Both the position numbers and the translations under genes were made by a program. A stretch of 64,000 bases of DNA from Lytechinus pictus (lineage: Eukaryota): contig NC_087248.1 in NCBI RefSeq assembly GCF_037042905.1, forward strand, positions 1,860,001-1,924,000, in the 5' to 3' direction. Within the stretch, counting starts at the first letter, position 1; each line of letters starts with the position of its first letter. Shown here piece after piece: positions 20,419-61,843 of this stretch. A model generated the notes under the pieces. It was given only the letters and a program-made list of their open reading frames with translations. It searched no databases and was not told where the DNA came from.

Positions 20419-21420
20419 TTAACCATTATTATTAGTAGTATCATTGTCAAGGCGTTGTGGATCGGGGTTTCCATTTTGGCTTTGGTTGGCTTCCATTGTT
20501 TTCGGATTCATGTATTTTCGGAAGCTCCAAAAAGCATAAACCATCAGGATGACCAAAGGGATTGTTGTTAGTACTGCCACAATAGTAACAAGGGGGCCAC
20601 TCCATTCTAGTCGGACCTGTCGATCAAAATGGCTGTCATCAGGAGTTTCGAGGTGTTTTTCAGTTAAATGTTGGTCTAATGATTCTGTGTGCTCTGGCTT
20701 GGTTGATAAAGAAGGGGAGGTTGGGGTGATGACTACTGATTCCCCCGTCTTGTCATATTGGAGGTTTAATGTGAATTCATTACAATTAGCCTCATTCGTT
20801 CTTTCACTAACATCGAGACTACAGCATCTGGTAGGCTCCCCTCTCTCAATCCACATTGTTTTGACTATGTTTGAACTATATCTTTCTTCCCGACGTTGTA
20901 GGTAAGGAGTTATTCTGCCGTTCTGGTAGCATCTTAAGACACCTGGAATGCTCCCTTCACTTGCAATACATTTCACCCACTGCCATCTCCCTGATATTTC
21001 AATGTCACTGTCAGTATCTTGAAGAATAGTACAGTTTGCTTTTCCTGGTGGGTACTTTACAGTGAGACTTATACTCTCTCTGGAACATTCTTCCTTTTCT
21101 TCACCAACAGTCCGATATGCCCGACATATGTATGTACCGCCATCATTTCTAGAAACATTATGGATAACAACATATTTTATATGATAATGTTGAGGTCCCT
21201 CGTCTACTCTAAAACGAAGCTTTCGGTCCCCCTGGAGAGATGATTGAATAAATGTACCGTTTCTATAAAATGGTTTTCCATACTGTTTGCTTATTTCAAT
21301 TAAACAGTTTTCAGTATCGATTAGCCTGCCACAAAATGTGAATTTTACACGTTCTCCTTCGTAATGCTGCAGTTGGGCTTCACAAATATGAAGAATTAAG
21401 AAAAGATAACCAAGGATCAT
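20419..21420 (-). CDS. Intronless type I membrane protein: Ig (V-like) domain + Cys-rich domain (subfamily A), 333 aa
   Basis: Hydrophobic N-terminus; IHNVSRNDGGTYICR Ig F-strand motif; YPPGKANC...CCS; TM LVTIVAVLTTIPLVILMVYAFW; paralog at 60833. Confidence 0.88.
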   Translation of the reverse strand: MILGYLFLILHICEAQLQHYEGERVKFTFCGRLIDTENCLIEISKQYGKPFYRNGTFIQSSLQGDRKLRFRVDEGPQHYHIKYVVIHNVSRNDGGTYICRAYRTVGEEKEECSRESISLTVKYPPGKANCTILQDTDSDIEISGRWQWVKCIASEGSIPGVLRCYQNGRITPYLQRREERYSSNIVKTMWIERGEPTRCCSLDVSERTNEANCNEFTLNLQYDKTGESVVITPTSPSLSTKPEHTESLDQHLTEKHLETPDDSHFDRQVRLEWSGPLVTIVAVLTTIPLVILMVYAFWSFRKYMNPKTMEANQSQNGNPDPQRLDNDTTNNNG

Positions 21421-21823
21421 TTTTCATGTTCAATTGCAGGCAATGTTGAGACTGGCTGCACGACGAGTATAAATACTTGAATGATATTTTAATCAGTGCT
21501 AACGCTATTATGACTTCTTAGATGATATAATGTTCATCTCCGTGCTTTTATAGGGACCTTACATATGCACTTGTTCAACCAAATGATGAAAGTAATCGAA
21601 AATTTTGCACTTCGTTTAAACCTCCGATGTGTAGTCGCAGATTTGAAATTCCATTACATTCGAAAGGATTTCGTTATTTCGTAGACCAATACGCTGTGGT
21701 GGTACATCTGTCAAAAAAAGAAAAAGAGTATCTCTAAAATGGTATTTCTTTCTTCGAATTGATGAGGATGAAGATGATGATAAATCAATGAAAATCAGTG
21801 AAAATATCGATATAATATATATA

Positions 21824-22690
21824 CAGTGCGTATCAAAATAAAGTTACACTTTGAAAAGCCCTGGGAATAAAAAAATATACAACATGTGGGTATTTTTTTC
21901 ACATATAAACTTGGGTTTGGGTCTCATCTATCCAATGAAAGTAAAGGTTTTGACAGAATGTTACACTTGAGTGAGCACTGTTCATTTTTTGTAAAGCTCG
22001 CAGAAATCTGTTTGCGCAGAAATGCTCATTTTCAGGCTGTGTCAAGGGGAAAGGGCGAAATCAAACTTACCCTTCGAAACATTTCTCATACATTTCCCTT
22101 GCACTTTTAGTCAATTGAAATAAAACGGATACATTCAAGCATTTTGTATAAATTTTGCCACCCAAATTGAAATTTCAACACTTTAGTAAGCACAACCTTT
22201 ACCCTTTTTGTGCCAGCTGGATCTGAGGACATAACCGAATCTGAACAAAAGTTTATATCAGACATCTCAGCATTTTTTCACTAATTTTTATCATTTAAAG
22301 TGAGTTTACATTTCATTTTTCATTTAATACTAGTTTCTCCACACTTTTTCCAAGCTTGACAATGATTAACAAAATGAAAATCAAGCTTAAGCCCTTTCAT
22401 GTAAATCACAGCTCAGTGTAAAGCAAATATCGTCACGATGACCTCGGTGTGTGGGGGAGTGGGGGTGGGGCGCAATGTACTCTCTGAAGTGTTTTGGGCA
22501 AGGAAACAATTAAAAAAAAAGGAAGAAGATATCTTGAAATTAATTTACTAGCTAAATTCCACGTGTTCTTCATGATTAAGATCTACTTTTATTCGCATAA
22601 CTATTTTCAAAATTCTGCGCAAATCACTTTTCACTAACTTTTCAGAAGTAAGTGGTGCTCACTCAAGCATAATATTTTTCGACAGTGTTA
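21824..22690 (+). mobile_element. Tc1/mariner-like MITE, right end lost
   Basis: TA|CAGTGCGTATCAAAA start; internal inverted matches (TGAGTGAGCAC ~21968 / GTGCTCACTCA ~22655); truncated by the tRNA-bearing repeat. Confidence 0.55.
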
Positions 22691-22699
22691 TCGTGGCCG

Positions 22700-22889
22700 C
22701 GGCGTTCAAAGCTGGAGGCCCGGGTTCGATTCCCGGCAGAGACATTTTTTCGGCATCACCAATTTTTCCAAAGGGTAGATAGCTCTGGGGAACCTTGATT
22801 TAAGCTACGCCTACCATTGTTCTCTTCTATCACAAAATATTTAAATAAAAAAGAGTTGCCAAAGCTGCTGTACATGTGTAACTTCACAC

Positions 22890-22933
<44 letters not shown>

Positions 22934-23400
22934 AAAGTTATACATGTACAACAGCTTTGGCAACTCTTTTATTTAAATATTGTAAAGAACTGGATGAAGA
23001 GAACAATGGTAGGCGTAGCTTAAATCAAGGTTCCCCAGAGCTATCTACCCTTTGGAAAAATTGGTGATGCCGAAAAATGTCTCTGCCGGGAATCGAACCC
23101 GGGCCCCGAGCTTTGAACGCCGGTGCCTTAACCACTAGACCACAGAGACGGGTTAGTGGCTAGGGCGACCCGATCCGATTGACCGTCAGATAGACAGATT
23201 TTCGACACTATACCAATTATAATTTCCTTTGTCGGGTGAAGGTGGGTTTCGAACAATGACAAGCCGCCATGCTTCAGCTGGATCAAAGCTAATGCTTTGA
23301 TACAGTACACGTATGGGAGAAAGTATACAAATGTGTAAAGTTATACATGTACAACAGCTTTGGCAACTCTTTTATTTATGTTCTCTTCATCCAGTTCTTT

Positions 23401-23407
<7 letters not shown>
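22700..23407. mobile_element. Unclassified (TA)n-associated tRNA-bearing repeat: full unit 22929-23407 plus inverted partial copy 22700-22891
   Basis: ~190-bp inverted arms around (TA)n; 47-bp direct repeat (22929-22975 / 23332-23378); 29-bp inverted repeat (22977-23005 / 23379-23407). Confidence 0.8.
23078..23149 (-). tRNA. tRNA or tRNA-like gene with anticodon TCA (opal-suppressor type), tRNA-Glu-like body
   Basis: GTCTCTG TG GTCT AGTGGTTA AGGC A CCGGC GTTCAAA GCTCG GGGC CCGGG TTCGATT CCCGG CAGAGAC A then TTTTT; 72 nt with A and B boxes; one anticodon-stem mismatch. Confidence 0.7.

Positions 23408-23463
<56 letters not shown>
23404..23463. repeat. (TA)n microsatellite; a second tract at ~22893-22927
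   Basis: Direct reading. Confidence 0.95.
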
Positions 23464-23466
<3 letters not shown>

Positions 23467-24374
23467 GACGAAATGAAAGGTTTATTTAATGTTCATCATG
23501 GTTTTGGAACGGTGAAGAGCGTAGAATAATTTTAATCCATGTATATAGTTGATTAGGGAAATTCAGTAATCATTTGTAATCGATTATGTATATAGGTATT
23601 TTCTTTTAAAATATTTAAGCACTATTTGCTGAGAAATAATGATGTTTACAACTGTTTGATTATGTTAGATGTTTACATTTAATCGTTTTTTACTGTTCCA
23701 GTATGAATATTAGAGACAATTACCATTGTTGTTGTTGTAAAGATTTATTTCATAACTCTAACTGTTTTTAAAAGATGATTAAATTTGAATTCTTGACAAT
23801 CTCCCTCCCCGATCATATGATTGGCAGTAAAAGGTTTCTAACCAAAACTCTGTTCAATTTTTATTGGAACCTGCTGCGACAGGATGAGCTTGATTTCTAT
23901 TCAGCAAAGTTATAAGAACTGAATTATTTGATTCTTGCTTGTCGTTATTTTGTTGTATGGAGCTACAAGTATACATGGTCGGAAGAGCAGAGGTACTGAC
24001 GAGAGAAGGAGTGAGAATACTGACTTTACCGAGAGAAGATACGGAAAATACTTAATTTACCGAGATACTGAAAATACGGAATTTACTGAGAATACTGACA
24101 TTACTGAGAATACTGAAAATACTGAGATAAGTGAGGATATTGAATTAAAGTACTGAGATTCCGAAATACTGAAATTACGGAGATGCTAATTACTGGAATG
24201 ACTGAAATAATGGAGATACGGAATGAAGGAGATGTTGAAATCCAGGAGATATAATCTAAGTTACTGGGAAGGAGCAAAGAGTCAGAAGTGAAAAAGACGG
24301 ACTTTACACCAACTGGGTGTATATTGCATCCGAAACGAACCAGCTCTTCAGGAGAGAAAGTCGGTTCGGCTACA
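23464..24374 (+). mobile_element. Putative 5' LTR of a Gypsy-like retrotransposon
   Basis: TGTGAC...GCTACA followed 2 nt later by a PBS and then gag; contains a degenerate 9-bp ACTGARAAT array (~23990-24220); left boundary inferred. Confidence 0.65.
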
Positions 24375-24376
24375 CG

Positions 24377-24394
24377 TGGTTTCAGAAGTGGGAT
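24377..24394 (+). promoter_or_regulatory. Primer-binding site, tRNA-Leu type
   Basis: TGGTTTCAGAAGTGGGAT, one mismatch from TGGTGTCAGAAGTGGGAT (complement of the tRNA-Leu 3' end, recalled). Confidence 0.75.
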
Positions 24395-24415
24395 AGTTGG
24401 TGTTGAAGTTCAGAA

Positions 24416-25297
24416 ATGGATGTTCGAGGACAAAGAAGGCGTGCGGTATCGCCGGCTGAGGTGATGGAGAAGTTGGAGAGCAGTATGGCGGAGATTGATC
24501 AGATGATGGCGGAGATACGGACCAGGATGGGGTTGACGCCATCATGGGGGACTGATGAGGCGTGCGGTAGGCATGGGCCGAGAGTTCAGTTCCGATCTTC
24601 ACAAACTGAAAACTTCAGAGCAGCAAGGATACCGCAGCCTACCGAACTGGAACAAGAATTTTCCAGGACTGAGCTACAAGATACCCGACATACACGAGCA
24701 CCCGAGATGAGAACCGTATCAGGAAATGTACTGCTAAATCATCACCAAGATAGATCGAAGGAACCAAATATTGTACCAGACAAGTTCGACGGCCGCACGC
24801 CGGTTGAAGACTATCTGAACCATTTTCAGGCGTGCATTGTGGTAAATCGCTGGGGAGAATCTGAGGCATTGGAATATCTGGCAGCCTGCCTGAGAGGTTC
24901 TGCGGTTACACTGCTTACACAGAAAACAGGGAGGCGACTCAGTTACTATGAACTAGTGGACAGAATGAGGAAACGATATGGTCCAGGTGGTAAGGCAGAG
25001 GTCTAACTTGCAGAGTTGGGACAGCGACGGAGAGGACCAGGAGAAACATTTCAGGAGTTAGGACAGAGCATAAGAGATCTCACGGCTCTCGCCTATCCTG
25101 AATTTGATAAAGACGGACTAGACCGGTTGGCGAGGAGACACTTTCTAGATGCGATTGTAGATTGCAAAATCCGAGAAGGGGTTTTCCGCTCGCAACCAAG
25201 ATCACTGGACGAGGCAATAGAAGCTGCTTTGAATGCAGAGGCGTTCTCAAGGATGGAGGATGAAAGGTGGGAATACCAGCAGACCAGGATGCTGTAA
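24416..25297 (+). pseudogene. Gypsy-type gag with in-frame stop at 25004-25006; no pol or 3' LTR seen
   Basis: PDKFDGRTPVEDYLNHF..NRW..LAACLRGSA and QELGQSIRDL..AYP..FLDAI..PRSLDEAIEAAL lie in the same frame across a TAA. Confidence 0.85.
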
Positions 25298-26474
25298 CCC
25301 GAGATGGCGACGGAATTCATGTCCGTACTGGCACACCCTTCTTGAGAGTGAGAATGAAAAGACTCATTCAAGACTTTCTTCTTGAAATGGAATCGGAAGA
25401 GCCAGACTCAGATGACGGAAATTCAAGAGAGAACTATCCCGAAGCTGGTCAGGCTAGTGTTAAAACATCAGAGGGGAACTCCTTTTGCAGAATTGTTGTA
25501 CAGCAATTGGGTTCTATCTCGGCTGATTGTGAGGAACAAGAGACAAGGAGCACTAAACGACTTAGTGGTACAGCAATCCCTGGAGGACAATTCGATAGAG
25601 CTGGAATATAGGTCACAGGCCTGATGGACGAGGGAGTCACAGGTGTGGAGCCATTTGGTGGGTGCACTTTGGCGGGCGTGCCGAAGCAGTTGCAGAACCA
25701 GTTGGCTGAGACTGTGCAGGATTTTCCAGTTGAATGTCGGGAATCGGTGCCAAGATCGTTTGAGAACTTCGGTAGTGTCTCACTTGAGAGCTGCTCGCTT
25801 GAGAAAGTAGATCATGTGCAGCAAGACAGCATGGAGCGTGAAACGGAAGAGGTACGACCATCCAAACAAGAGAGCAGAAGATATCTAGACCAGATGAACA
25901 GCGATGGAGGAAGGCGACAGAGATCACAGGCGGGTCGCATGAACAGGAGCCAGGGTGTTAAACTGAAAACCTGGTCATTTATTGGGGGTTATTTTGCCAC
26001 TTTTAGGTCAAGATAGGATTTTGTGAGAAATATAGGTCTACAGTCTTCAACACATCAGTTCCCATCCGGTTTCCTAAAAAAATCAGATTCCTTTGGCGCG
26101 GCGTTGCAGTGACTTCAAAATAAATATGATTACTAAGGGTGCGGTATATACCCGAGCGTTTTTTTTATACGACTGTCCGTCAGGAGTGGGTGCAATGGCT
26201 GACAATTCCATCAAAGCAGAAAAGGTGACCCTTAACCAAACTTGCACCTCTACAAAATATATTTATAAAGGGCTGTATCTAGAATCATCAGGAGCATAGT
26301 GACAAGAAATAAGGGTCCCGATCTCTTATAGCTTGGTCACAACTCGTCACGCATCTCCTTACGACCACACATGTTTTACCTGCTGCGAATTTGGTAGAAA
26401 ATCCTTGCGTCCTTAGGCAAGGGTCCACAATTTTTCATCAAGCATGCAATAGCATGCCTATGCATAATAATTAA

Positions 26475-26690
26475 AGGAGAAGTCCACCCCAACAAAAATT
26501 GATTTGCATAAAAAGAGAAAAATCCAACAAGCATATCACTGAAAAATTGGGTGTAAACTAAGACAGTTATGACATTTTCAAGTTTCGCATGACTCGAATT
26601 CACAAAACAATCTTGCACATCCTGGTCGATATGCAAATGAGTGGACTGATGACGTCACCAACTCATTATTCTTTTTTGATTTTACAATAT
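26475..26690 (+). mobile_element. Truncated, diverged Kolobok/T2-like MITE
   Basis: TTAA AGGAGAAGTCCACCCCAACAAAAA, colinear with the start of the 1204 copy. Confidence 0.75.
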
Positions 26691-26921
26691 GATTACTATG
26701 TATATTTCTTAAAGGAGATGGACTGAACTGCCAAAATAAAGGAAAAGTAGGGGATTACACTAAAATTCGCTTTGCAAGTAATTTTTGTTAATTCAAGGCA
26801 GCATTAGCCACAATGATGAGAAGGGAGAACTTTTCAAAAAGTGTCTATAAGAGGATGACATCTCATGGGGGGGGGGGGCTATTCTAATTTGTGAAATTAC
26901 ACAAAACTTGTGATAACAATC

Positions 26922-27257
26922 TAATTTTACATAGCGTTTAATAAATCGGAACAACGCTCTAAGCACTTTACATGTATATATTATTAACCCGGTCAACGGA
27001 TCCTTGCATGCCCGCATACAATGTATGTACTTTCTCCACTCTCTGGGGAGCATTCTAACAAGAGTTCCAAGACTCAATTGCTAGGCATACTACTTAGGTT
27101 TTCACATTCTACCGGGTACCCATTTACAACCTGGGTGGAGAGTGGCAAAGTGTGGATTAACGCCCTGCCAGAGGACGCTATATAGGCCATAGTGGGATTC
27201 GAATAGTCATGACCCTCTGATTACAAAACGAAAGTCAGAACCGCTAAACCACGGCGC
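26922..27257 (-). mobile_element. tRNA-derived SINE
   Basis: Minus-strand head GCGCCGTGGTTTAGCGG..TTCGAATCC; core GTAAATGGGTACCCGGTAG shared with the SINE at 45373. Confidence 0.8.
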
Positions 27258-27279
27258 TTGTATCTTTATACATCACCTG

Positions 27280-27434
27280 ACACGTATTGTTTTCACCAAG
27301 ATCACGAAATACGACGCCAGAGTTGAACCTTTTTCAGGCGTCGCTGATGCGTTACATAAGATCTTACAAGACTCCAACCAAGAGACACGCTGGAAAGTAG
27401 TCGCCCAACAAGTGGCATTTTTGACACATGCTAT
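27280..27434 (+). pseudogene. Isolated degraded copy of the NAALADase last exon
   Basis: Close match to 16472-16626; acceptor AG lost, 1-nt deletion, 3'-truncated. Confidence 0.92.
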
Positions 27435-30145: not shown

Positions 30146-30239
30146 TTAATATATCAGACAGATTAATGAAAATACAAAACAATGTAAAAAAATTTAGCAA
30201 ACATTGGCTTTATTTAGCACGTCAAGTTTATAAGATCCC

Positions 30240-31710: not shown

Positions 31711-33099
31711 CTACGCTGAACTATAATCGTTGCTATATGTGTCACTACTTCTGCTCATCCAGCTCTTCAAAGAATTTGATGTAGATGGGCAAATATTATC
31801 TGCATAATCATAAACTTCGTTTTGCATTTCCGCAATATTTCTGTCTGTAAATACATTCGATCTAGGAATTTCATACATGGAATCACTCAAAGATACAGTC
31901 TCTATTTGTCCACACTCCTCTTCACAAATATTTCCAGCACTGTCTGGTGTGTTCTTTTTCAACACCTTTAAAACCACGCAAGATACGAGCGCCACTGTGC
32001 AAGCAATAACAATCACTACGATCACGACTCCACCCACAACTATTGCAATTACGTGATGAACATGAAGAATCTTCCTTTCATTAGCATTGAACGTTGGGGT
32101 CATCGATGTTGAATATGATCCTCTGAGTTGGGGCTTTTCTGACCAATTCCGGGCTGTTGTTGGTTGCAAAGTCACTGCAGAAGAAGCGTTATCCATATTC
32201 AAATGACTCATTTCATCTTTGGAATCCTGATGAAGATTATTTGAACTCAAAATTGTATCAGTTTGGTGTATTGTGAATTCCCTTTGTCCCAAAGAAATTG
32301 ATTCTCGAACTGCATCAGGTTTTATATTTTGTGAACATGGTGGTTCACACGTTTGAGTCGAGATTGGTGGAGTGATTGTCCCGGTATCAGTAATGAGCAC
32401 CGTGGAATGTTTCATTTTAAGAGGTTCAATGATACACTCGAGCTGTTTACCAGGAAATTCAACTTCACTGGTTACTATGCAGGCGATTTCATGAAAATAC
32501 AGTTCACGTGTCATTAGAATCTGTTGGGTTAAAACTTTAAATTGGCCTTCAGTAGCTGAATTCGTAGCAACGGTATTATCATAAAACACTCTGCTCTGAT
32601 TCCATCCGATATCAACAGGCGGGTTGCAAGATTTCACCAGACATCGAAACGTAATAATTTGGTTTATCTCTGTACTCATACCATCATGGTCGCAGTGTAT
32701 ATCTTCCTTCGTTGGAAAACACTGTACAAAGGCCCAAGCGCTCCTTGAATCGTAACAATCTTCATTTGCACGATCAATGACATAACAAGTGACAAATCTG
32801 TCCCTTCCTCTGATCGTGTTCAGTAAGAGTGTAGATGTTAATAAGTTATCATTTCCAGAATCTTCTGTTTTCTTTGCGTTATGTACACTGGGAATAACAC
32901 TCCATTTCACAGTATGCGATTCTTTATTAACGTTTCTCAATGAGCAACTGAAAGTAGCACTATTACCTTCTGTTACCTGTATATTACTCGGTTGAACAAA
33001 AAAATCATGAGATGTGCAAATGTGATCTGAATAAACCACCGGAATATATGAAAGCGACAGTATGGACATACTAAATGTAGCAACTAAGTGCCAATCCAT
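31711..33099 (-). CDS. Intronless type I membrane receptor: two Ig domains, S/T-rich stalk, TM, Tyr-motif tail (subfamily B), 462 aa
   Basis: Signal peptide; FFVQPSNIQVTEGNSATFSC..W..C; FRC..NPPVDIGW..IAC; long hydrophobic TM; tail with MYEIP, VYDYA, TYSNDY. Confidence 0.88.
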   Translation of the reverse strand: MDWHLVATFSMSILSLSYIPVVYSDHICTSHDFFVQPSNIQVTEGNSATFSCSLRNVNKESHTVKWSVIPSVHNAKKTEDSGNDNLLTSTLLLNTIRGRDRFVTCYVIDRANEDCYDSRSAWAFVQCFPTKEDIHCDHDGMSTEINQIITFRCLVKSCNPPVDIGWNQSRVFYDNTVATNSATEGQFKVLTQQILMTRELYFHEIACIVTSEVEFPGKQLECIIEPLKMKHSTVLITDTGTITPPISTQTCEPPCSQNIKPDAVRESISLGQREFTIHQTDTILSSNNLHQDSKDEMSHLNMDNASSAVTLQPTTARNWSEKPQLRGSYSTSMTPTFNANERKILHVHHVIAIVVGGVVIVVIVIACTVALVSCVVLKVLKKNTPDSAGNICEEECGQIETVSLSDSMYEIPRSNVFTDRNIAEMQNEVYDYADNICPSTSNSLKSWMSRSSDTYSNDYSSA

Positions 33100-37886: not shown

Positions 37887-40800
37887 ATGGAGTTCACTAT
37901 CTACAAATACCCATGTGCCTGTTGTATGAAACCGGTTAAGAACAATCAGAAGGGACTGAAGTGTACCAAATGCAATCAATGGCTACATATCATTTGTGCT
38001 GGTATTCCTGAAGAGATCTACAATGACAAGTCAGAGAACTTTTTCGGTTGGCAATGCAACATTTGTATTTTTAAGGACATGCCCTTCTATAATGAATCGG
38101 AAAATATCACTATTCGAGAGTCAGTTAATGTCAGTACAAATACTACCAACCGAAACATTGCTTGTATTCATGGTTTATACTACCAAGAATTACGTGGTAA
38201 TGGCCTTAATATCGCCCATTTAAATGTTAACAGCCTACTGAGACACATTGAAGAAGTGAGAACATTTGTTAAGACTAACAAGGTTCAGGTATTCGCAGTT
38301 AATGAAACAAAAACAGATGAATCTATCTATGATAAAGAAATTATGATTGACGATTACAATTTGGTTCGTAAAGACAGAGTTCGACAGGGTGGTGGAGTAG
38401 CCATTTATCTCCACAAATCATTACATTTTGAAAAAATAATTCATGAATTCCTTGATGATTTAGAAGCACTTGTTATTAAGGTTTATCTCAAGTTTTCAAA
38501 ACCTCTCATCGTATCAACTTGGTATAGACCACCATCCTCAGATATTGGAATCTTTAATTTGTATGAAAGATTTCTAATCGTTATTGACACAATGAATTGT
38601 GATATAGTTATAGCAGGTGACGCAAACTGTGATATCATAGCTAAACCCTTATCAAGCATGACCAAGAAATATGTTGATATAAATAATGTTTACTCTCTGG
38701 TCCAAGTTAATACCAAAGAAGCAACAAGAATCACAAATCTTTCTGCTACATTGATTGATCACCTATTAACAAACAACACCAAAAACGTAGTGAATCATGG
38801 TGTAATTCATAGCGGAATGAGTGACCATTCGATTAGCTTCCTGACCTGGAACTCTAAGATTTGTGCTCAGCCCAAATTTATCACTTTCAGAAGTTGCAGC
38901 AAGCTCAATATTGATGACTTTAGAAATGATATTCGTAACCAGAATTGGGAAAGTATAGATCAATGTAATTCAGTTGATGACGCTGTCGATTTATGGCAAA
39001 ATATGTTTTTACAAGTTGTTGACAAACACATGCCAAATCGTTCAAAAAGAATAAGTACAAAGGGTTCCCCTTGGATGAATGCAAATATTTGTAAACTTAT
39101 GAAAAAACGTGACAAACTTAAAAGAAAAGCTTGCAAACTGAAAGATGAAAAACTTATGTGCGAGTACAGAATATTACGAAATAAGGTAACAAATGAAGTA
39201 AGGAAATCAAAGAAACGGTATTACTCTGATAAATTTACAAATTTTAAGGTAAACCCAAAACAGACTTGGAAAACCTTAAAGTCCATTATTCCGAATAAAA
39301 AACGTGAAATACCCACAGTTTCGTCTAACTCGGATTGTAATACTGAAACTGCTAACCTATTCAACACTTACTTTGCAAATGTAGGGAGACAATTAGCCAG
39401 TGAAATACCCGATATGAACCTCCATACAGAAAATGGTAATTATACAAATGAGACTTTTGCATTCACTCAGGTGAACGACCATGATGTTTTGAAAATCATA
39501 AGAAATCTTAAAAACACTAAGTCTGTCGGTGTTGATAAGATATCTGTCTTTGTCTTGAAGGCATGCTCTATGGAGATATCAATGAGTATTGCTAAGTTGA
39601 TTAATTTATCTTTGTCAAGTGGTATATTTCCGCAACAATGGAAAAAAGCTAAGATTATCCCAATTCACAAAGGTGGCGATAAAAATTCTCCTTCGAATTA
39701 TAGGCCCATCTCAATTTTGCCCTGCGTATCTAAAATACTGGAAAGGGTTGTCCAACGGCAAGTTTTAGATTTTTTTGCGAAATAATTATATTCTGACACC
39801 TGCCCAATCCGGTTTTCGGCCAAGGCACTCAACCATTACCACTCTCCTAAAGGTAACCGATGACTGGTTTCACTCAGTCAATCTGAAACATTACATTGGG
39901 GCCGTCTTCGTCGATTTAAAAAAAGCATTCGACACCGTGAATTGTGATATTCTTTTGAAAAAATGAATAACTTAGGTATTTCTGGCACACCATCCTTATG
40001 GTTTCGAAGTAACATGTCTAACCGGGTTTGTAGGACTCTTATTAATTCGGAACTCTCTTATGAATCAGTTATTAACTGCGGTGTGCCCCAGGGATCACTC
40101 CTGGGGCCACTGCTCTTTATATTATATGTCAATGATCTAGTGAAATGTATTAATACATGTCATATCCAATTGTATGCGGATGACACCGTTTTGTATTTTT
40201 TACACCCCTCCATAGATAGAATCAACGAGGCCCTGAACTCAGATTTAGAAAATATGTACCAATGAATGTGCCAGAATAAGTTAAGTGTTAACTGTAAAAA
40301 AACGGTCTGTATGCTCATTGGAAGCAAGAATATGATTTTTAAACAAAATGTCCTTCATGTTTCCTTAAATAATACCCCATTAGAACAAGTTCATCATGTC
40401 AACTACCTAGGCATCATAGTTGATGATTATTTGAATTTCAATTTGCATATAGACAACATGTTGCAAAAAATAGGTCAATTAGTCGGTTTTCTGGGAAGAT
40501 TGCGGCGATCCCTAAGTGAATCGATTCTGAAATTAATATATAGTTCATTGATCCTCCCCTACTTTGATTATGGTGATGTTGTTTACGATGCATCCTTTAG
40601 GAAATACACAGACCGCCTTCAAAAACTGCAAAACAGAGCAGGTCGTATTATACTCCAAATTAAACCCGAATCTCATATATCTATTTTGGAAATGCATGAT
40701 ATACTTAATTGGCAATTGTTGGACAAAAGAAGAAGCGATCATTCCCTTATTCTCATGTATAAGATCATGAATAATCTATCTCCAAAATATTTAAGAAATG

Positions 40801-41320
40801 AATTTGAGTTAGTATCACATACGTATCCCTCCCGTTTCGGAACCAAATTTAAATTACCCAAACCAAGAACAAATTACCTCAAAAGATCCTTCAAGTATAA
40901 AAGCGCCATGGCTTATAATTCCCTTCCTCTTCACATTAAATCATCCCCTAGTATTAACATTTTCAAATCTAAGATTGTTGATCTGTAGCCACATGTACTC
41001 CGGTACCCCCTCCCCCATTCCCTGTTAGGTTTGCACCCCTTCCTTTTTTTTCCTTTTTTTTTTCGGTGTTTTTTTTTCGGTGTTTTATCTAAATATGTTT
41101 ACTGTTGATATTTGTATTTTCATTCATCTTCTGTACATCTGTTATTTTAATGTGGTTATATTGTGTCTAAATTATACGTTAATGTCAAATGTTATGTACC
41201 CCACGGAAGACCAGCGTGACTGTGCCAGTCACGCTGAATGTGGGCTATCCACCGTATTTTATTGTATATAATTGTGCTTTTAATACGGAAATAAATACTA
41301 CTACTACACTACTACTACTA
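37887..41320 (+). mobile_element. Near full-length CR1/L2/Crack-group LINE (PHD - APE - RT), inactivated
   Basis: CxxC..CxxCxxWxHxxC..WxCxxC; HLNVNSL, NETK, GGGVAIY, GDAN, IDH, SDH; YRPISILP, VDLKKAFDTV, GVPQGSLLGPLLF, YADDT; frameshifts ~39780 and ~39962, stop 40263-65; AATAAA + (CTA)n tail. Confidence 0.95.
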
Positions 41321-42317: not shown

Positions 42318-42361
<44 letters not shown>

Positions 42362-51367: not shown

Positions 51368-51508
51368 GGGCCCCGTTGCATGCTAGTTACTATTATGGTG
51401 ACTTTGCAATCCAGTGGTAGCACCATGGTAACGATGGTCAACAGCCAATCGAAATCAAGGACTCAATGAAAGTTACTATCGCATGGTAACCTCTACGCAT
51501 CGGGGACC
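51368..51508. mobile_element. Small Harbinger-like MITE
   Basis: GGGCCCCGTTGCAT ... GCATCGGGGACC degenerate inverted ends. Confidence 0.5.
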
Positions 51509-52054
51509 ACGAGTCCTTGAGGGAGATGATTCACAATGCCGAGTTTTGCTTACGCATGTCTACATCACCAAAATACTGTCTGCTTGGACTGATTTGCAAT
51601 GTGAAATATACTGAAATAATGAAATACACCCTAATGATACACCCTAGCAAACACCGTAGTTCTTTTTTAATTTATTATTATTATTATTTTTTTTTTTTTT
51701 TTTGGGGGGGGGCAATATTTGCATTCATCATTTAGCTAAAACCTTTTCCCCTATATATTTTTTTAAAAGAGGCTCTTTGCCCATCTCAGAGTGAAATTTT
51801 TATGTTGTCATACAGCTGACATGAGAGAGTTCGCTTGGAAGATACACCTATTTTCTCATTCTCTCTTTTGACCAGAATTGATATAACGTTTTCGCCCCTA
51901 TACATCGATATGATAAGGCAAGACTATATATATATCAATCATCCCCCGGGAGCATCCCAAAGTAATCGAATGTCCTACGTGTGTTTCCAGTCTTTCTCGA
52001 TACATACAACATTTCACACCAAGAACTAATATCTCCCACATATCTTGCTTTATG

Positions 52055-52775
52055 TTAGTCTGGCTGTTGTGACTGTTTTGCTCTAAACGCTTTGAGATGA
52101 TGGCAAAGATGGGGATTGTGTTTTATACTGAAAACTATAGGATCAATTTTAAACGTCTGATTCAAGAAAAGGATCCCATTTATTTCAAGTAGAGTACGTT
52201 GAAACGAACTAGGATGAGGATCGTCATCAGAAAATCTCCATTTAATATTTACAGGGGGACGACCGACTGGAACTTGACAGGAAACTGTCAGAGTGTCCAT
52301 ATTATTCAGTACTGTCACATGTTGTGGGGAGCATCTAATGGATCCTTCGTTCGGGAAATGGGCCACATCAACCGTCGCAACTTTGGAGTAAAACGTTTGC
52401 CAGTTGTAATTCTGGCCGGTCAAATGGCGTAAAACACAACTTGCAGTGGAGATTCCTCTTCCTTTTAAAAATTGAAAGTTTAGAAGTTTTCTGACAGGTC
52501 TGGTGATCAAAATAGTCTGAGATATGTGTTCGATAGTCCGGTGGATTTAATTGCCATGTCAAAGAATCTTTTCCTATATTTGCTCGAGATATTGTACAAT
52601 TCAACGTAACATCATCGCCTTCATGAATTATCACATCATGTGGTTGTGTTGAGAAGAAAGGTGTGTCATCATGTCTGCATGCTATTGCTGTTGCCCAGCA
52701 GTTAAGAAATGTGTCAAAAATGAGATGCGATACCAAACCAAACCCAAAACAAGACATATTGGACTTGTTGGTCAA
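52055..52775 (-). pseudogene. Frameshifted Ig-domain receptor gene (subfamily B)
   Basis: PFFSTQPHDVIIHEGDDVTLNC..W in one frame and FPNEGSIRC..VSCQVPVGRPPVNIKW in another; both parallel the 462-aa ORF. Confidence 0.8.
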
Positions 52776-53159
52776 CAGTCGTCAGTGAACATGAAGTGTT
52801 AAATGTTTGAGTGGTGTTTGGTATTCATACAATAGCAAGACATGAGATCATGCTATTAAATCGTTAAGTGATTATCTATCATAAAGAGCACTCTCCTTCC
52901 AGTTTTGACATGATGATGATTTCATGATGGTAGTTTCATTCCCCATTTTGATGAAAGAATTATCAATGGTATGATTTCCATATGTCTTATTTGATGCAGA
53001 GTATCCATTTTGACTTGTTAAAGGATTTTCCTGAGATTTAATTCAGACATCCTCAATGACATCTCCCAGTAAATTTCCAGCGATGCTCAATTAGCCTTCA
53101 CATAAAAGTAATTACTCCAGATATTGATCTTGGCCTTACCGAAATGAAATTCAAAATTA

Positions 53160-54180: not shown

Positions 54181-54357
54181 ATGACAGCTTAACCATGCCC
54201 GTATTCTGGGGTGGGGGCTTTCGGAGCCCGGGCCCCCCGGGTAGGCGAAAGGGAGGCGCCAAAAAGAGGAAGAAAAGAGAGGGAAAGAAAAGGGGGAGAA
54301 AAAGGAGGGAAAGAAAAAAAAGGGAAAGATAGAGAGAAGGAAAAAAAGAAGAGGGAA

Positions 54358-55050
54358 GGGGGCGCCGACTTGATGTTTTACTTAGGGTCGCCAAATTGAT
54401 GTCCGACATAAGGAGGGGGGGGGGCATCGAATTGATGTTCGACCTAGGGGCACCGAATTGATGTTCGACATAGGGGCGCGAAATTGATGTTTGATTTAGG
54501 GGGCGCCGAATTGTAGTTCTACCTAACAGCATTGATGTTTGACCTCGGGGCGCCGAATTGTTGCTCGACTGAGGGGCGCCGAATTGATTTACGACATGGG
54601 GGGGGGGTAGGGCGCCGAATTTATGTTCAACCGAGGGGTGCGCCGAATCGATGTTCGACCTGGGGGCGCCGAATTGAAGTTCGACATAGGGGCGCCGAAT
54701 CGATGTTCGACATAGGGGCGCCGAATTGATGTTCAACCTAGGGGGGGGCGGATTTATGTTCGACATACGGGCACTAATTTGATGTTTGTCCAGGGGGGCG
54801 TTTCATGAAAGGACTTGTCGGACGTTTTATCCGACAAGTCCCATTTTATCCGACAGTTACCATAGTAACAGTACCTCTCAGCCAATCAACATCAGAGAAA
54901 GATGTCAGATCTGACAACTTGTCGGATGAAAATGTTGATGAAACACTCCCCTGGTGCGCCAAATTCTTATTCGATCTGCGGGGTTCCAATTTGATGTTTG
55001 AACGGGGGGGGGGGGGGGGGCGCTAAATTCATGTTTTACATGGGGGGGGG
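54358..55050. repeat. ~28-bp minisatellite (AGGGGCGCCGAATTGATGTTCGACMT) with an inserted MITE at 54794-54950
   Basis: About 20 units; same unit at 44570-44700; MITE ends GGGGGCGTTTCATGAA / TTGATGAAACACTCCC. Confidence 0.85.
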
Positions 55051-55059
55051 CAAACTCAT

Positions 55060-55990
55060 GCTTCCTCGCATCAAATGCTTATAGTTAGATGCCCATCTTG
55101 TTCATGATTACCAAAAGTGCTTAGAAAATCCCAATTTAATGTCAGAATATCAACAATTTTCATCTCGTGCTTTTTGCTCGCATCAATTGTCTAGATAGAT
55201 ACCCATCCTGTTCAAGGTCCGAAAATGTGCCTATAGAATGACAAGTTTTGAGTCGGAATATCAAAGATTTTCAGTTTGCGCTTCGTACTCGCATCGATTA
55301 ATTAGATGCCTTTCCTATTCATGATTACAGAAAGTGAAAGTGCATAGGATGTCCAGATTTTAAATCATAAAATTAAAAGTTTTACCAGCTCGTGCTTCGC
55401 GCTCGCATCAATCGCTAAGTTAGATGACCACCATGTTCATGATTACCAAAAGTGCTTAGAATGTCAAAAATTTAGGCCAGAATATCAATTTTTTTCAGCT
55501 CTCGCTCAATTGTTAAAATAGATACCCATCTTGTTCATGTTTACAAAAAATGCTTAGAATGTCCAATTTTGGGACGGAAATTAAAAAACTGTCAGCTCGC
55601 GCTTCGCGCTAGCATAAAATGTTGAAATAGATAAGGTGACGATCCTTTTCATGGTTATATAAAGTGCTTAGAATGTCCAACTTTGGGTTGGAATACTAAA
55701 AATTTTAAGCTCGCGCTTCGCGCTCGAATAAAACGATTTGTGAGTTACCCATCCTAATCATGATTACCAATAATGCTTAAAATGTCCAAATTTTAGGTTG
55801 GAATATCAAAATGTTGCAGCTCGGTCTTCGCGCTCGCATCAATTATTTAGATAGAAACCCATGCCTTTAATGGATACAAAAAGTACTTAGAATGTCCAGT
55901 TTTGGGTCGGAAATTCAAAAATTGTCAGCTCGCGCTCACATGAAATGTTGAGATACCCATGCTATTTTTGATTATCATAAGTACATACGG
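55060..55990 (-). repeat. Reverse-orientation GCGAAGC-core ~110-bp array
   Basis: Repeated GCTCGCGCTTCGCGCTCGCAT cores with related spacers. Confidence 0.85.
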
Positions 55991-57270
55991 ATTTTCCAAA
56001 TTTGAGGTCAGAATATGCAAAAGTGCTTAGAATGTCCGATCGGGAAACATATAAATGAAAATATCCCCCCTCTTATTGGAGAGAGCGGGATCCACCCCTG
56101 GTAAAGAAATTACAGCTTCCACACACAAAATTTTAGCAGGGCCTACCACTCTGATGAGAAGTTAAACTAAATTCAAATCGTGCTTAATATTCTATGTTTT
56201 CTGGTCGCATTTAATTCTTTTCAAAAAGTGGTATTACAACATATTCATGGATATTTTTTTCATGAACACATTAAAAAAAGAGTGGTCTTCGATTGTCCTT
56301 TTCACGTTATTATAACTTCACCTATGATTGTCTGGCGGGAAGGGACGCCATTTTACGAAAAGTTCACAGGGGCGCCAAAATTAGGTCGCCCCCCCCCCCT
56401 CGGTGCAAAATCCTGGATACGCGTGAACAGTTACACCAAAGCCTACATAGCTTTAAACATATTCTTTCCAAATACGTTTCATTTCAACATTAATTGACTT
56501 GCATATGTCCCCATCTCTCCCCCCTCTCTCTCTTTCTCCTTCTCTCTTTATTTTTCCCTTTCAGCTAAACTTTTTCATTCATGTCCACTGTTATATTATT
56601 ACAATAATATAGCCTTTTATCTTAATTCCATCGCTCGGTGTGTCTTTTGTATCTATTTTCCGTTACAAATCTTATTTGTTACGTTGTAATTGTCTAATTA
56701 TTTCGTCATTCTTAACAGTTTGGGGCTAATTCTTTATTTTATTTTATGAAAAAAAAAAATCATTATACATTCGTATTTTCAGGGGCCTCAGAAATGCAAT
56801 CCCTGAATTTATTTTAGGTTCCACCGCTTTTGTTTTTCGCAGAACCCTCTTTTTCAACTTATTGTACTAAGTCATTCTTTTCTTTCAAGACATGTTCATC
56901 TTTATATGTAATTCAATTGTTGTTTGTTTATCATACATGCATTATGAATTGAAAAGGAAAACAAGAGTGGAAGAAATAAATTCAAATAAAATCAAATAAA
57001 AAAAATTGAAAAATCATAAAAAAATAAGTAGCATACTTTTGACACTCTAATAACTGGTATTTACCTCAGCTCTCTTAAAGAATATATACATGTACAGGAG
57101 ATTTCCCTAGGGCATGTTGGACAAGAGGTCGTAAAGTGATTGTAACTAACTATTGCAATAATAGTAAGTTTATAAACTTTTAACTTTGAATCAAGAAACA
57201 ATATGTATTGATACATACATTTTTAGTCGTTTTTCTATGTTATTATTATTTAATTTAGCATTTCAACAAC

Positions 57271-57951
57271 AAACAAGTGGAACGCCTCTGGCAGTCTCAC
57301 CTGCATTACGCCATTCGATATAGCAGCAGTGCAGACTTTGAAAACAGCCATTAAATAATTATTCACCAAAGAAAACACTCATATGATAATAAAATACTAT
57401 GTCCAATGGCCCAACATGACCTTTGACCATGATCATGTGACCTAAGACATGTGCAAAACAATCATTCATACTTGATTCCCCTTATGTCTATGTTTCATGA
57501 ACTACATGTGTAGATCCATAAACTTTCTAAGTTATGATGCCAATTCAACTAATTCCCCAACACGGCCAAAGTTAATTGACCCTGAATGACCTTTGACTTT
57601 GGTCATGTGAACAGAAACAAGCACAAGATATTAAGGGATACATGGTTACTCTTATGTCCCAAGTTTCATGAACTAGATTTATAATCTTTAAATTTGTGAT
57701 GACAATTCCACAAATTCCCCCAACATGGTCAACATGGTCAAAGTTTGTTGACCCTAAGTGACATTTGACCTTGGTCATGTGACCTGAAACTCAGGCACCC
57801 GTATATGTTCAAGTTTCATGAACTAGGTTCATATACTTTAGAAGTTATGACAACATTTCAAAAATTTAACCTTGGTTAAGATTTCAATGTTGACGACGCC
57901 GCCGTCGGAAAAGCAGCGCCTATAGTCTCGCTCTATGCAGGCGAGACAAAA
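57271..57951 (-). mobile_element. Non-autonomous Helentron-like element, family 2
   Basis: Reverse copy of 4870-5845 with both ends: AACAAGTGG..GTCTCACCTGCA and TGCAGGCGAGACAAAA. Confidence 0.78.
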
Positions 57952-59825
57952 ACTACAATAGAAGATATTTACAAAATCCAGGTCGGCTGGGAAATAAAGG
58001 GAACAAAATAAGTTACGGTACCTCTCACGCTTTCCGCCCCGATATGGACTTTTTTGGCAACTTACAGTCCACAAGAATACACCAATGCCAAATTTATATG
58101 AAACAATCATAATTTAAATAGAAGCAATATTTTCAAAATTAAGATAGTGTCATTTAGGATTAATAACTATGTGCTTAAAGGAAAAGGAGAGAACAAGGGT
58201 ATTTTCAATTCAATTCAGTCAAAGATGGCCTTTATTGATATCCAAACATAATGCAAATATGACAATCGCAAATGACGAACATTATTCATTATTTATATTT
58301 ATGTTCACATATATATATATTAAACACAATATATACATGTATATACAAATATAATCATAATTGTGAAAATACAATTCGAACGAAAAAAATGAACAATGAA
58401 CAGGTTTTCGTAAAAATTACCTGTTAACATGACAGAGGGGACGTTGCATGTAAAACAGATGATTGATAAAAGATAAAGTCACATTCAAAATAGCCGACTT
58501 GGCATGCTTGTGGAGAGGGGACTGTGACTGGTTGCATAAACTGTGGTACCAAAATGAAAAAAGGGGAAAGTTTCAAATTTTGTTCAGTATGTCAAGTAAC
58601 CATGGTAATTTGCTATTTTAAATCGTTTTGCTCTACTTGACAATGTTGATAAGTGTGTGTATGGCAAAGGTATAAGATCAAGGAACCATGTCTGACAAAT
58701 ATAGATATTTGAAAATATTTTTGTTCAAATTTTCTACACATTGCTAGTCTCCTCTCCTGAAGAGTTGTTAATTCCTTTTTTGGCATTCATTTGTATAATT
58801 ATTTGGTGTAACTATGCCCTAAAATAATCTTACCTAATTACTTTTGCTTGCATTTTGTTTTTAAGAGTATTTCTTTGTTATGCTGTAAGACTACTGCATA
58901 TGACTGAAAATTGGAACCCATTGTTCTAAGAAAAAAATGTTTTTACTTCTGGAAATGAATCATTTGACGATTACATCAAATATATTTTCTACAGCAGTGC
59001 TTTGTGTTGCAAACCTGTTTTTCCTCTGACAGTTCTAAATATTAAATATATTTTATATAATTATATATTATCACCCGTATCAGACATCTGAGCTGGTCAG
59101 TTACAAAACCGTATTTCCCTGTATTTTATTATTATCAGGAAGGGATAGGTATATTGTTTGTATTTTCCTCGGTCTCAATGCGCGTATTGACTTTGCATGC
59201 AGAGACGACGCAAAATATACCTTTGTATTTTCCCTGGTCTCACATCCGGGCCTTTGAGGATGCGAATGAAGTGATACGCTTCATAATGTTCCGCGCACCA
59301 ACGATCTACGTCATAATAAATACAACGCTGGATCTGGGCGCTTGCAAGTACGTCATAATGGTAAAGTGCAGAGCCTAGACACTGATATTTTTATGACACA
59401 ACAGAACTCTATTCTTAAAAGATATCACTGTTATGATTTTTGCTCTAGATATCTGATTTGGATGATAATAAAAATATTGACTTCCCTTCTTTCGGGGAAC
59501 ATCAAATATGTTGCCCTTAAAAGACCCATATTTCCCTCGTCTAAAGACTCGGGCCAATATGATTCTTTTGCTGGCAATATATTTGATGTTCCCCTCAAGA
59601 CCAGTCAATATTATATAATTATTTTACCTCCGACAAAATCTTCTGTTCAACATTTTCAACACTGACGATTACTTTGATATAAAAAAAAAATCTGCTCTTA
59701 ATCATTTATAGGTAAATAAAAACTTAGAGATATATGTTTTTAATAAAACTACTAGTGTTATCATTTCAGTGCCAATAGTATCATTGTCATTATTATCATC
59801 CTGATTACAAAAAAAAACCATCTAC

Positions 59826-60081
59826 NNNNNNNNNNNNNNNNNNNNNNNNNNNNNNNNNNNNNNNNNNNNNNNNNNNNNNNNNNNNNNNNNNNNNNNNNNN
59901 NNNNNNNNNNNNNNNNNNNNNNNNNNNNNNNNNNNNNNNNNNNNNNNNNNNNNNNNNNNNNNNNNNNNNNNNNNNNNNNNNNNNNNNNNNNNNNNNNNNN
60001 NNNNNNNNNNNNNNNNNNNNNNNNNNNNNNNNNNNNNNNNNNNNNNNNNNNNNNNNNNNNNNNNNNNNNNNNNNNNNNNNN
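59826..60081. other. Assembly gap (256 N)
   Basis: Direct reading. Confidence 0.99.
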
Positions 60082-60101
60082 AGAGTTTGGAGTAGTAGAT
60101 G

Positions 60102-60637
60102 CCCGGGGGGGGGGCACTCGACCAAAAAAGTGGTAGGGGTGTGCCGCGGGCGAGACAAAAAACGGGGGCCTTGGAGCGGGCTTATTGTAAAAAGGAGGGT
60201 CCTCTGAACGGGCTTCGGAAAGACAAATGTTTGTAAAAACGGGGGTCCTTGGATCGGATCGCCAGCGTGTGAGTTTGTATGCATCCCTATGGAACGAGCA
60301 TGCTTGCATGATGCAGCTAGCCCGGCGGCACGGCCGCCGAGTGCGCTCGCGCAGAGACGATGGTCGGACAGCGCTCTCGGCCGCTTTTCACCAAAATCGC
60401 AGCTTCAATGCGACCGGAACGGTGTAACGAAAAATATGCGACGCTTTGGAGCGGATTTCTTTCTTCCTTTTTTCTCGATAAGAAGAAAATGCTATGCCTT
60501 GGAACGGCTTTCTTTGTTCTTTTTCTCAATAAGACAAAAATGCTATGCCTTGGATCGGAAATTTGAGTGTAAAAATGGGGGTCCCCTCCGCGGCACATAC
60601 CCATTATGCATTATATACTGAGTGCCCCCCCCCCCGG
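60102..60637. mobile_element. Unclassified GC-rich MITE
   Basis: CCCGGGGGGGGGGCACTC / GAGTGCCCCCCCCCCCGG; AGTAGAT on both flanks. Confidence 0.75.
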
Positions 60638-60832
60638 AGTAGATATATAATCTTCATTACTCTCATTATTGTTCTGATTATTGATTAACCATGTTATCAT
60701 CATTTTTACTATCAGTATTATTACTTTGAAAACACACGCCTTTATATCATTAATAGCATCTGATCATGATCATCATTGTAACCGTCGCGACGGTTACAAT
60801 GACGCGTCGTTTCATCATCATCATTATAAACA

Positions 60833-61843
60833 TCAATTGGATTGTCGGTGTTCATTTACATGATCTATATGTCCATAAGTTGTGGGCTTTTCTACTTCCT
60901 GATTGGAGGGAGATGATAATTCATACATGTTTATAATATTTTGAGTGTCCTCATCATCGACAGGACTCCACCCGCATGTACATCTGACATATTGCTCACA
61001 TATACATAACTTATATCTAAATATTAGCCATAAAATAACAATCAGTAAAGCAATAAGGCACAATACGAAAGTGACAAGTGACAATATATAGAAATTGTTG
61101 TTAAATTTTTCATTAGCTTCCACAGGATTTAATGCTTTGTTATCGGAGGAAGTTGTAGTTTGTAAGTAAAATGTAAAATCATCACATTGTGAAATTTCGT
61201 CAAGCTCTTTTCTCGTACTACTACAACATTGCAGATGCTTTCCTTTTTGTACAAACAATTCTTGGTATAATATTGTATCATTGCTAAATAGATCCGTTTT
61301 AGGTGGAGTGAAATCGCCATTTTGAATACATATCAAATATCCCTGTACATTACCTACTTTTGCAATACATTCTGTAATATCGTAAAGGAATGATTCATTT
61401 GATAATATAAGATCACAATGAGCTTTACCAGGTGGATAATGAACGATTAAACCCACCTCATTCAAGATCGTATAAACTGGTGAACTGGCGTCAGAGACCA
61501 TACAGCGATACATCCCTGCGTCGTATCGAGATACATTAAGTATAGTGAGATATAAGTTACTCCAATCATTGTTATACGTTATTTCTGCTACCTTAAACCG
61601 AGTTCGCTGATCTGGCCTCAGAACAGAGTAGTTAAGATATCCACTTTCATAAAATGCTGTGTTGTTTTGATATTGCAGTTTGAAATTAACATCGTTTGTT
61701 GAGTTATAACTGAAACGGAATTCTGCATTCTCCCTTTCCATTGATATCATTTGTGATTTGCCAAATCGCAATTTAACAAAGAATAACATGAAAATAGAGA
61801 ACAGAAGTGAATATTTAACAGGCATGGTTGCTCGGTTATTCAC
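60833..61843 (-). CDS. Intronless type I membrane protein: Ig (V-like) domain + Cys-rich domain (subfamily A), ~330 aa
   Basis: Signal peptide (probable start MPVKY); LTILNVSRYDAGMYRC; YPPGKAHC..CIQNG..CCS..CDDF; TM ILSLVTFVLCLIALLIVILWLIF; tail MYEL, TYGHI. Confidence 0.88.
   Translation of the reverse strand: MNNRATMPVKYSLLFSIFMLFFVKLRFGKSQMISMERENAEFRFSYNSTNDVNFKLQYQNNTAFYESGYLNYSVLRPDQRTRFKVAEITYNNDWSNLYLTILNVSRYDAGMYRCMVSDASSPVYTILNEVGLIVHYPPGKAHCDLILSNESFLYDITECIAKVGNVQGYLICIQNGDFTPPKTDLFSNDTILYQELFVQKGKHLQCCSSTRKELDEISQCDDFTFYLQTTTSSDNKALNPVEANEKFNNNFYILSLVTFVLCLIALLIVILWLIFRYKLCICEQYVRCTCGWSPVDDEDTQNIINMYELSSPSNQEVEKPTTYGHIDHVNEHRQSN

Follow-up and report, generated by a model that had tools for sequence, protein, structure and literature searches.

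Genes of the window

A cluster of four co-oriented minus-strand genes, assigned to the immunoglobulin superfamily (IgSF) on profile and structure-prediction evidence, was analysed in a 64-kb stretch of the genome of the sea urchin Lytechinus pictus (NC_087248.1, positions 1,860,001 to 1,924,000), which is called the window below. The open reading frame (ORF) listing contains four minus-strand ORFs at 20419-21420, 31711-33099, 52055-52510 (151 aa) and 60833-61843, and all six frames of the window were scanned with A- and B-family hidden Markov models (HMMs) built from paralogs. An earlier note on this DNA had placed the ORFs at 20419 and 60833 in one family (A) and those at 31711 and 52055 in another (B), and all of them were found at these places. 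No further A or B member was detected in the window by the six-frame HMM scan. The genes and their parts (TM, transmembrane segment) are as follows:

20419..21420, minus strand: A1, intact family-A gene, 333 aa (ORF; A-family HMM E = 4e-78)
A1 residues 1-15: signal peptide
A1 residues 16-122 (21055-21375): IgV domain
A1 residues 123-222 (20755-21054): IgC-like, Cys-rich domain, followed by a disordered stalk
A1 residues 275-304 (20509-20598): TM helix, followed by a 30-aa tail
31711..33099, minus strand: B1, intact short-form family-B gene, 462 aa (B-family HMM E = 6e-124)
B1 residues 33-126 (32722-33003): Ig1, preceded by the signal peptide
B1 residues 134-224 (32428-32700): Ig2, followed by a 110-aa disordered stalk
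B1 residues 343-382 (31954-32073): TM, followed by an 80-aa tail
B1 residues 409-412 (31864-31875): YEIP motif in the tail, which also has a C-terminal Tyr
52055..52757, minus strand: B2, family-B pseudogene (tblastn, translation, HMM matches in two frames)
60833..61825, minus strand: A2, intact family-A gene, 330 aa from the ATG at 61825 (A-family HMM E = 1e-74)

A1 and A2 are paralogs with 27% identity (E = 9e-26). The listed start of A2 at 61843 is a GTG codon, and the ATG at 61825 aligns with the start of an ortholog-like gene. A2 contains IgV and IgC domains, a TM and a 60-aa tail with a Cys-rich juxtamembrane part. In each of the three intact ORFs (A1, B1 and A2), a hydrophobic signal-like start is followed by a single TM close to the C-terminus, and a tail then leads to the stop codon. 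This agrees with the previous description of signal peptide, ectodomain, TM and tail in one piece. Charged TM residues, as found in activating paired receptors, were not seen by eye in A1, A2 or B1.

The ORF at 52055 had been described as a pseudogene and shows only a weak pairwise relation to B1 (E = 6e-4). The ATG of B2 lies at 52757; the signal peptide and the first part of Ig1 are encoded in one frame and the remaining Ig1 and Ig2 in another, with a frameshift near 52500. The B-family HMM matches 52371-52781 (HMM positions 17-100, 1.3e-15) and 52058-52546 (HMM positions 105-201 of 619, 4.2e-19), and similarity stops at position 201. Neither a TM nor a tail was found by tblastn, translation and HMM search of the locus. 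Because the B-family HMM matches two overlapping frames, B2 is a frameshifted, truncated gene, and the description as a pseudogene in the note is borne out.

Immunoglobulin fold of the two families

Searches of single sequences against Pfam gave Ig matches that all fell below the gathering threshold. Family profiles were built from alignments of 66 sequences for A and only 11 sequences for B. Among PDB sequences, the A profile matched CEA (1e-18), pIgR (4e-15) and JAM-A (1e-10), and also CAR and CD276. The B profile matched titin (1.4e-14) and nectin-1 (1.4e-11, across two domains), and also Robo and SYG-2.

The AlphaFold2 model of A1, made with the A alignment, has a mean predicted local distance difference test (pLDDT) score of 80.8, with most of the ectodomain above 90. 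Its N-terminal domain is a V-type sandwich, which is followed by a seven-strand second Ig domain and, past a disordered stalk, by a TM helix. The top Foldseek matches to A1 were butyrophilins (BTN3A1), CD80/CD86, PD-L1, ICOSL, SIRP (SIRPa) and Necl/CADM (Necl-4), with probability 1.0, E values of 1e-9 to 1e-12 and identities of 11-18%. The AlphaFold2 model of B1 contains two Ig domains at a pLDDT of about 90; a disordered stalk of 110 residues links them to a TM, past which the tail is again disordered. Its Ig1-Ig2 pair was matched by Foldseek to D1-D2 of Neph1, SYG-1 and Rst (TM-score by target 0.64-0.66) and to D1-D2 of nectin-4; titin, LRIG1 and RPTPs rank equally well. Many solved Ig proteins were matched at probability 1.0 in the Foldseek searches with the A1 and B1 models. 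As judged from the profile matches to PDB sequences and from the predicted structures, both families belong to the IgSF, an identity already proposed for the window genes, and no named IgSF subfamily includes either of them.

Family signatures and the tail motif

Family A proteins consist of an IgV+IgC ectodomain, a TM and a short variable tail. The motifs EGxxAxLxF, DxGTYI, YPPGKAxC, CYQxG, CCSS and CxCxDF are kept in this family. The paralogs are 20-35% identical, and the mean column identity of the 66-sequence alignment is 19%; C164, C199 and C200 (A1 numbering) are invariant, and D93, G95 and the DxGTYI motif are near-invariant. This is the pattern reported for the window, in which cysteines and motifs are kept and other positions differ. 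A1 contains C30 and C98; many paralogs are without the F-strand Cys, and there is no conserved C-strand Trp.

In family B proteins, two to four Ig domains are joined by a long stalk to a TM, and the tail that follows carries a conserved Y-E/D-x-P motif. The canonical C/W/C residues are kept in Ig1 and Ig2, and C52, W66 and C105 are invariant among the 11 sequences. The long forms carry two extra Ig domains, whereas B1 and its closest relative are two-Ig short forms. The Y-E/D-x-P motif occurs once, approximately 50-60 residues after the TM, in 9 of 10 complete L. pictus B tails. These tails also contain a near-invariant Tyr near a variable C-terminus (e.g., DYSSA, ASDY). The tail of a B protein from Diadema contains four EPAYEVP repeats. 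YxxP is the preferred pattern of Crk/Nck/Abl-class SH2 domains. No conserved immunoreceptor tyrosine-based activation motif (ITAM) or inhibition motif (ITIM) was found in these families.

Family size and coding structure

Six-frame searches of the 812-Mb assembly identified at least 93 matches to A1 and at least 30 matches to B1. Internal stops are absent from 92 of the 93 A matches, most of which lie in open frames of 280-410 aa, and from 27 of the 30 B matches, which lie mostly in frames of 480-800 aa. Almost all B matches (28/30) are located on contig C4. The genes had also been given the flavour of an expanded immune-receptor family evolving by birth and death. This is weak because few copies are broken: stops occur in one A match and three B matches, or 4 of about 123.

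Among 87 ORFs from 72 loci, nearly all have a hydrophobic signal-like start and most have a single TM near the C-terminus. In L. pictus, five RefSeq proteins each match one genomic ORF of a paralog from end to end at 100% identity, and the coding region annotated for these five paralogs is thus one piece. The single-piece anatomy described for the window ORFs thus extends to annotated paralogs, and the retrogene feature of a coding region without introns is present, as shown by the complete ORFs from signal peptide to stop and the five RefSeq identities. No parent gene was identified for these old copies (20-35% identity), and the retroposed origin put forward in the note is at most possible.

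Another RefSeq model of L. pictus, XP_054753974.1 (C4:0.36-0.37 Mb, in the region of loci L019 and L029), contains a complete A protein, including the TM, joined to part of a B Ig1, and ends in a B-type tail with a YEDP motif. Either read-through has produced a chimeric transcript here or the model is an artefact of annotation.

Subfamily A' and recurrent gene sets

A second ORF of 270-327 aa was found directly upstream of the A gene, on the same strand, in 15 fetched loci:

A'-to-A tandem loci: L003-L009, L019, L020, L036, L037, L053, L056, L065 and L068

These ORFs, designated A', are each other's best matches and form one clade in a three-clade tree, with a value of 99 in the Shimodaira-Hasegawa-like approximate likelihood ratio test (SH-aLRT). 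Most A' proteins have a hydrophobic C-terminus with a very short tail or none, the latter giving a glycosylphosphatidylinositol (GPI)-like look. The distance from the A' stop to the ATG of A ranges from -20 to 327 bp; it is below 100 bp in 8 of the 15 loci, two of which overlap, and the intervals are mostly without AATAAA. Such spacing suggests that the two genes are transcribed as a dicistronic unit, or that promoters lie within the upstream gene.

The B genes are also linked to these units. On C4, the start of 20 of the 28 B matches lies no more than 10 kb from an A or A' match, compared with 0.7 expected and at most 5 in 2000 random placements. At one locus, B starts 170 bp past the stop of A. 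The earlier division into subfamilies A and B stood, but the third subfamily and the recurrent A'-A-B sets, which cluster mainly on C4 and are linked in Diadema too, had been overlooked.

In the tree, deep A lineages, including A1 and A2, are located on C4, and a derived, well-supported A-only clade is scattered over at least nine contigs. The sister of A2 is the A gene of the A'-A pair L068 (C4:1924100-1927800), which is in divergent orientation. This locus was fetched from approximately 100 bp past the right end of the window, and its A'-A pair starts approximately 750 bp past that end. The nearest relatives of A1 (L002) and B1 (L022) sit together approximately 80 kb to the left. Both A1/B1 and L002/L022 adjoin a NAALADase-like TFR_dimer exon, and a block duplication (NAALADase-A-B) is therefore drawn from this arrangement.

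The exon of this type in the window, at 16467-16652 on the plus strand, is an exon-like NAALADase/TfR fragment covering TFR_dimer positions 69-121. The intron-rich neighbouring gene previously described was verified to the extent of this one fragment, and peptidase M28 exons of the NAALADase-like gene were not detected in a search with PF04389. TFR_dimer exon-like fragments recur every 85-110 kb or so beside A/B genes and are also present at C4:1793190-1793381 and C4:1987479-1987673.

Other features of the window are as follows:

21744-23583: high-copy repeat directly upstream of A1, overlapping a tRNA-like short interspersed element (SINE) at 22929-23407
37887-39785, plus strand: remnant of a retrotransposon without long terminal repeats (non-LTR), with a PHD finger and an APE-type endonuclease ORF (long interspersed element, LINE), between B1 and B2
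40266-40988, plus strand: second ORF of that retrotransposon remnant, without a Pfam match
59826..60081, no strand: assembly gap (N) between B2 and A2, in low-complexity repeat-like intergenic DNA

In four small public runs, the word depth of the repeat reaches thousands over 21744-22663 and tens to hundreds over 22664-23583. The assembly gap lies approximately 750 bp 3' of the A2 stop and outside every ORF, and no reading frame is affected.

Occurrence in other species

A profile search of 1.84 billion representative sequences detected 246 proteins below 1e-30, many of them full-length single-stretch matches of 280-400 aa. All named relatives are annotated as "uncharacterized protein" and come from L. 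pictus, L. variegatus, S. purpuratus (XP_030845405.1), Diadema setosum and D. antillarum. The ESM-Atlas cluster nearest to A1 (score 0.98) is nameless, without Pfam assignment, and composed entirely of echinoderm members. The literature was searched by the RefSeq LOC identifiers of members and by topic, and no paper on these families was found. The families are undescribed and, so far, restricted to sea urchins. The homolog counts, genome-wide (93 A, 30 B) and across taxa (named relatives echinoid), bear out the previous view of large, clustered, lineage-restricted and uncharacterised families.

In Diadema setosum OZ188204.1 (L073:9947-11767), A' and A form one uninterrupted ORF of 606 aa. This ORF encodes, in order, a signal peptide, IgV-IgC, a hydrophobic segment, a short loop, a second hydrophobic segment, IgV-IgC and a TM, and its product is predicted to cross the membrane three times and to carry two ectodomains. 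The fused ORF is flanked by a 774-aa B gene, 5.8 kb upstream, and by a B fragment, 4 kb downstream. A gene model for a 5'-nucleotidase, annotated on the opposite strand, spans the Diadema A'/A/B cluster. A second fused A'+A protein of 605 aa, encoded by an 1818-bp single-exon gene, was found in ENA ERZ26222911 and is 25% identical to that of Diadema. Lytechinus and Diadema are estimated to have split more than 200 million years ago. The A'-A-B linkage predates this split, because the genes are linked in both. The A'-A unit was either ancestrally one protein or has been fused repeatedly.

Selection

Nei-Gojobori dN/dS ratios (omega) were calculated pairwise by domain for 12 paralog pairs with at least 55% identity. 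Omega is 0.06-0.58 for IgV, 0.23-0.63 for IgC (with one value of 1.5 at a dS of 0.06) and 0.55-1.03 for the stalk, TM and tail. A2 was also compared with an ortholog-like ORF from another urchin (Logan contig L074). The two share 55% amino acid identity, with a dN of 0.30, a dS of approximately 1.16 and an omega of 0.26 (range 0.18-0.28), and they have the same start position and a conserved Cys-rich juxtamembrane tail. The genes are constrained by purifying selection, the Ig domains most strongly. The dN/dS check named in the earlier note gave Ig-domain values mostly of 0.2-0.6 (range 0.06-1.5) without a diversifying excess, and the pairwise ratios by domain contain no sign of diversifying selection.

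In one pair, L054 and L064 (C4:8.83 Mb), the IgV domains are near-identical (dS 0.07, dN 0.004), whereas dS is 0.31 for IgC and 0.47 for the tail. This pattern is as expected from domain-limited gene conversion, at which it hints.

Comparison with known systems

Family A has the same build as B7, butyrophilin and Necl (CADM) proteins, namely a signal peptide, IgV, IgC, one TM and a short tail, but shares only 11-18% identity with them and no family-specific sequence match. No B7/butyrophilin-specific homology was found: identity in structural alignments is 11-15%, and the CD276 match of the A profile covers a short junction stretch and is on a par with matches to CEACAM, JAM and IgLON. The genes of these groups have one exon per domain, whereas the coding region of family A is one piece. 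Family A also differs from these groups in having its own motifs (YPPGKAxC, CYQxG, CCSS and CxCxDF), no conserved C-strand Trp and no B30.2 domain.

The Ig1-Ig2 pair of family B superposes best on D1-D2 of the Kirrel/Neph-SYG-1-Rst group (Neph1, SYG-1, Rst) and of nectin-4. Family B has two to four Ig domains, compared with five in Kirrel and three in nectin. The V-C2-C2 arrangement and the C-terminal afadin-binding motif of the nectin/Necl type were not found in B, in which Y-E/D-x-P is the sole conserved tail element. Unlike Kirrel and nectin, B is present in about 30 copies that are linked to A and A' genes. Echinoderm KirrelL is an intronless IgSF gene needed for cell fusion (PMC8903837). 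B is likewise intronless, a likeness of gene structure.

The Alr genes of Hydractinia are multi-exon, highly polymorphic and functionally tied to allorecognition (PMC9546547). The Alr complex and the A/B genes are each a large complex in a single region, made up of IgSF type I membrane genes that have diverged strongly. In both, the Ig domains lie under Pfam thresholds and are recognised by structure prediction, and tails contain tyrosine motifs. The systems differ in that the A/B coding regions are single-piece, selection on them is purifying, and sea urchins are solitary.

Proposed function and alternative explanations

It is secure that these loci contain conserved, single-coding-piece IgSF surface-protein genes of undescribed echinoid families. 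A wider explanation is considered probable: the four ORFs belong as genuine members to two linked families of IgSF single-pass surface proteins, known so far only from echinoids, with a role in recognition or adhesion. A, A' and B would be surface proteins by which cells recognise or adhere to one another, as Kirrel/nephrin, nectin/Necl or B7-type pairs do. B may serve as the signalling chain, in which phosphorylated YxxP would dock Crk/Nck/Abl-class SH2 proteins, and A and A' may be ligands or co-receptors, possibly for the B encoded beside them. This mechanism is suggested by the architecture, the conserved linkage and the structural neighbours.

Several observations weigh against this explanation. 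A search of public runs found no RNA run containing A1. One low-depth 255-nt contig of uncertain library type lies on A1 at 21113-21366, with 96% identity and four synonymous and four non-synonymous differences; otherwise, four small runs of uncertain type gave only repeat coverage upstream of A1, which speaks neither for nor against transcription. The public protein collection contains no exact copy of the A1, A2 or B1 protein, and these genes may be unannotated or modelled differently. The A and B genes of the window are 8-10 kb apart, with transposons between them and no tight pairing. The YxxP motif is short, and its SH2 reading rests on general knowledge. A complex prediction for the A1 and B1 ectodomains scored 0.00, which gives no verdict either way.

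A diversifying innate-immune or allorecognition receptor family, in which the many paralogs would provide recognition breadth and B-type tails would signal in coelomocytes, is unlikely. Large clustered multigene families with V-type Ig domains, tyrosine-motif tails, the pseudogene B2 and the formal likeness to the Hydractinia Alr complex (PMC9546547) would all be in keeping with such receptors, as would the patchy dS between domains of one pair, with its hint of gene conversion. However, omega in the Ig domains is mostly 0.2-0.6 and lies below that of the stalk and tail, the comparison of A2 with its ortholog-like gene gives 0.26, few copies are broken (4 of about 123), the paralogs are old (20-35% identity), and neither ITAM nor ITIM is conserved. 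A classical fast-diversifying immune family is argued against because selection on the Ig domains is purifying. On the model of echinoderm KirrelL, an intronless gene required for cell fusion (PMC8903837), the proteins might instead be molecules of gamete or embryonic recognition or fusion, with a Kirrel-like B and A or A' as its partners. The structural closeness of B1 Ig1-Ig2 to D1-D2 of Neph1, SYG-1 and Rst and the B-profile matches to SYG-2 and nectin-1 point in this direction, but Foldseek places titin, LRIG1, RPTP and nectin equally well, and about 30 B and 90 A copies far exceed the needs of a single developmental adhesion pair; this alternative is very doubtful.

It is highly improbable that the genes are compact cargo of an old virus- or transposon-like element, or non-functional ORF relics. 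Frames have stayed open, at an omega below 1, in paralogs that are 20-35% identical, neither viral hallmark genes nor terminal repeats are associated with these copies, members occur in Lytechinus, Strongylocentrotus and Diadema, with linkage kept between Lytechinus and Diadema, and RefSeq models exist for paralogs. These observations are set against the tight packing and even overlap of intronless ORFs, the transposon-rich surroundings (including the LINE endonuclease ORF at 37887-39785), the absence of A1, A2 and B1 from the protein collection and the failure to see RNA.

The explanation by recognition or adhesion can be taken further, in a form that is quite unlikely. The A'-A-B sets would be heritable "recognition modules", that is, linked genes whose products interact as surface partners and which have stayed together for over 200 million years, in which the A'-A unit would be dicistronic or would have been split from an ancestral three-pass protein with two IgV-IgC ectodomains and a hydrophobic hairpin. 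If true, this would be of note, as a polytopic two-ectodomain IgSF protein and animal dicistronic receptor genes are both unusual.

Significance

Work on immunity and cell recognition in deuterostomes uses sea urchins as a reference point, and the species studied here, Lytechinus pictus, is genetically tractable. At least 120 loci in this species belong to IgSF families that lack a name but are clear in structure, in which an arrangement of three genes recurs and a tyrosine motif is conserved. Clustered, intronless and divergent Ig genes should not by default be taken for immune receptors; selection on the Ig domains is purifying here. The split or fused A'-A unit may serve as a case of gene fission or fusion in membrane proteins, and A, A' and B are concrete candidates for cell-cell recognition.

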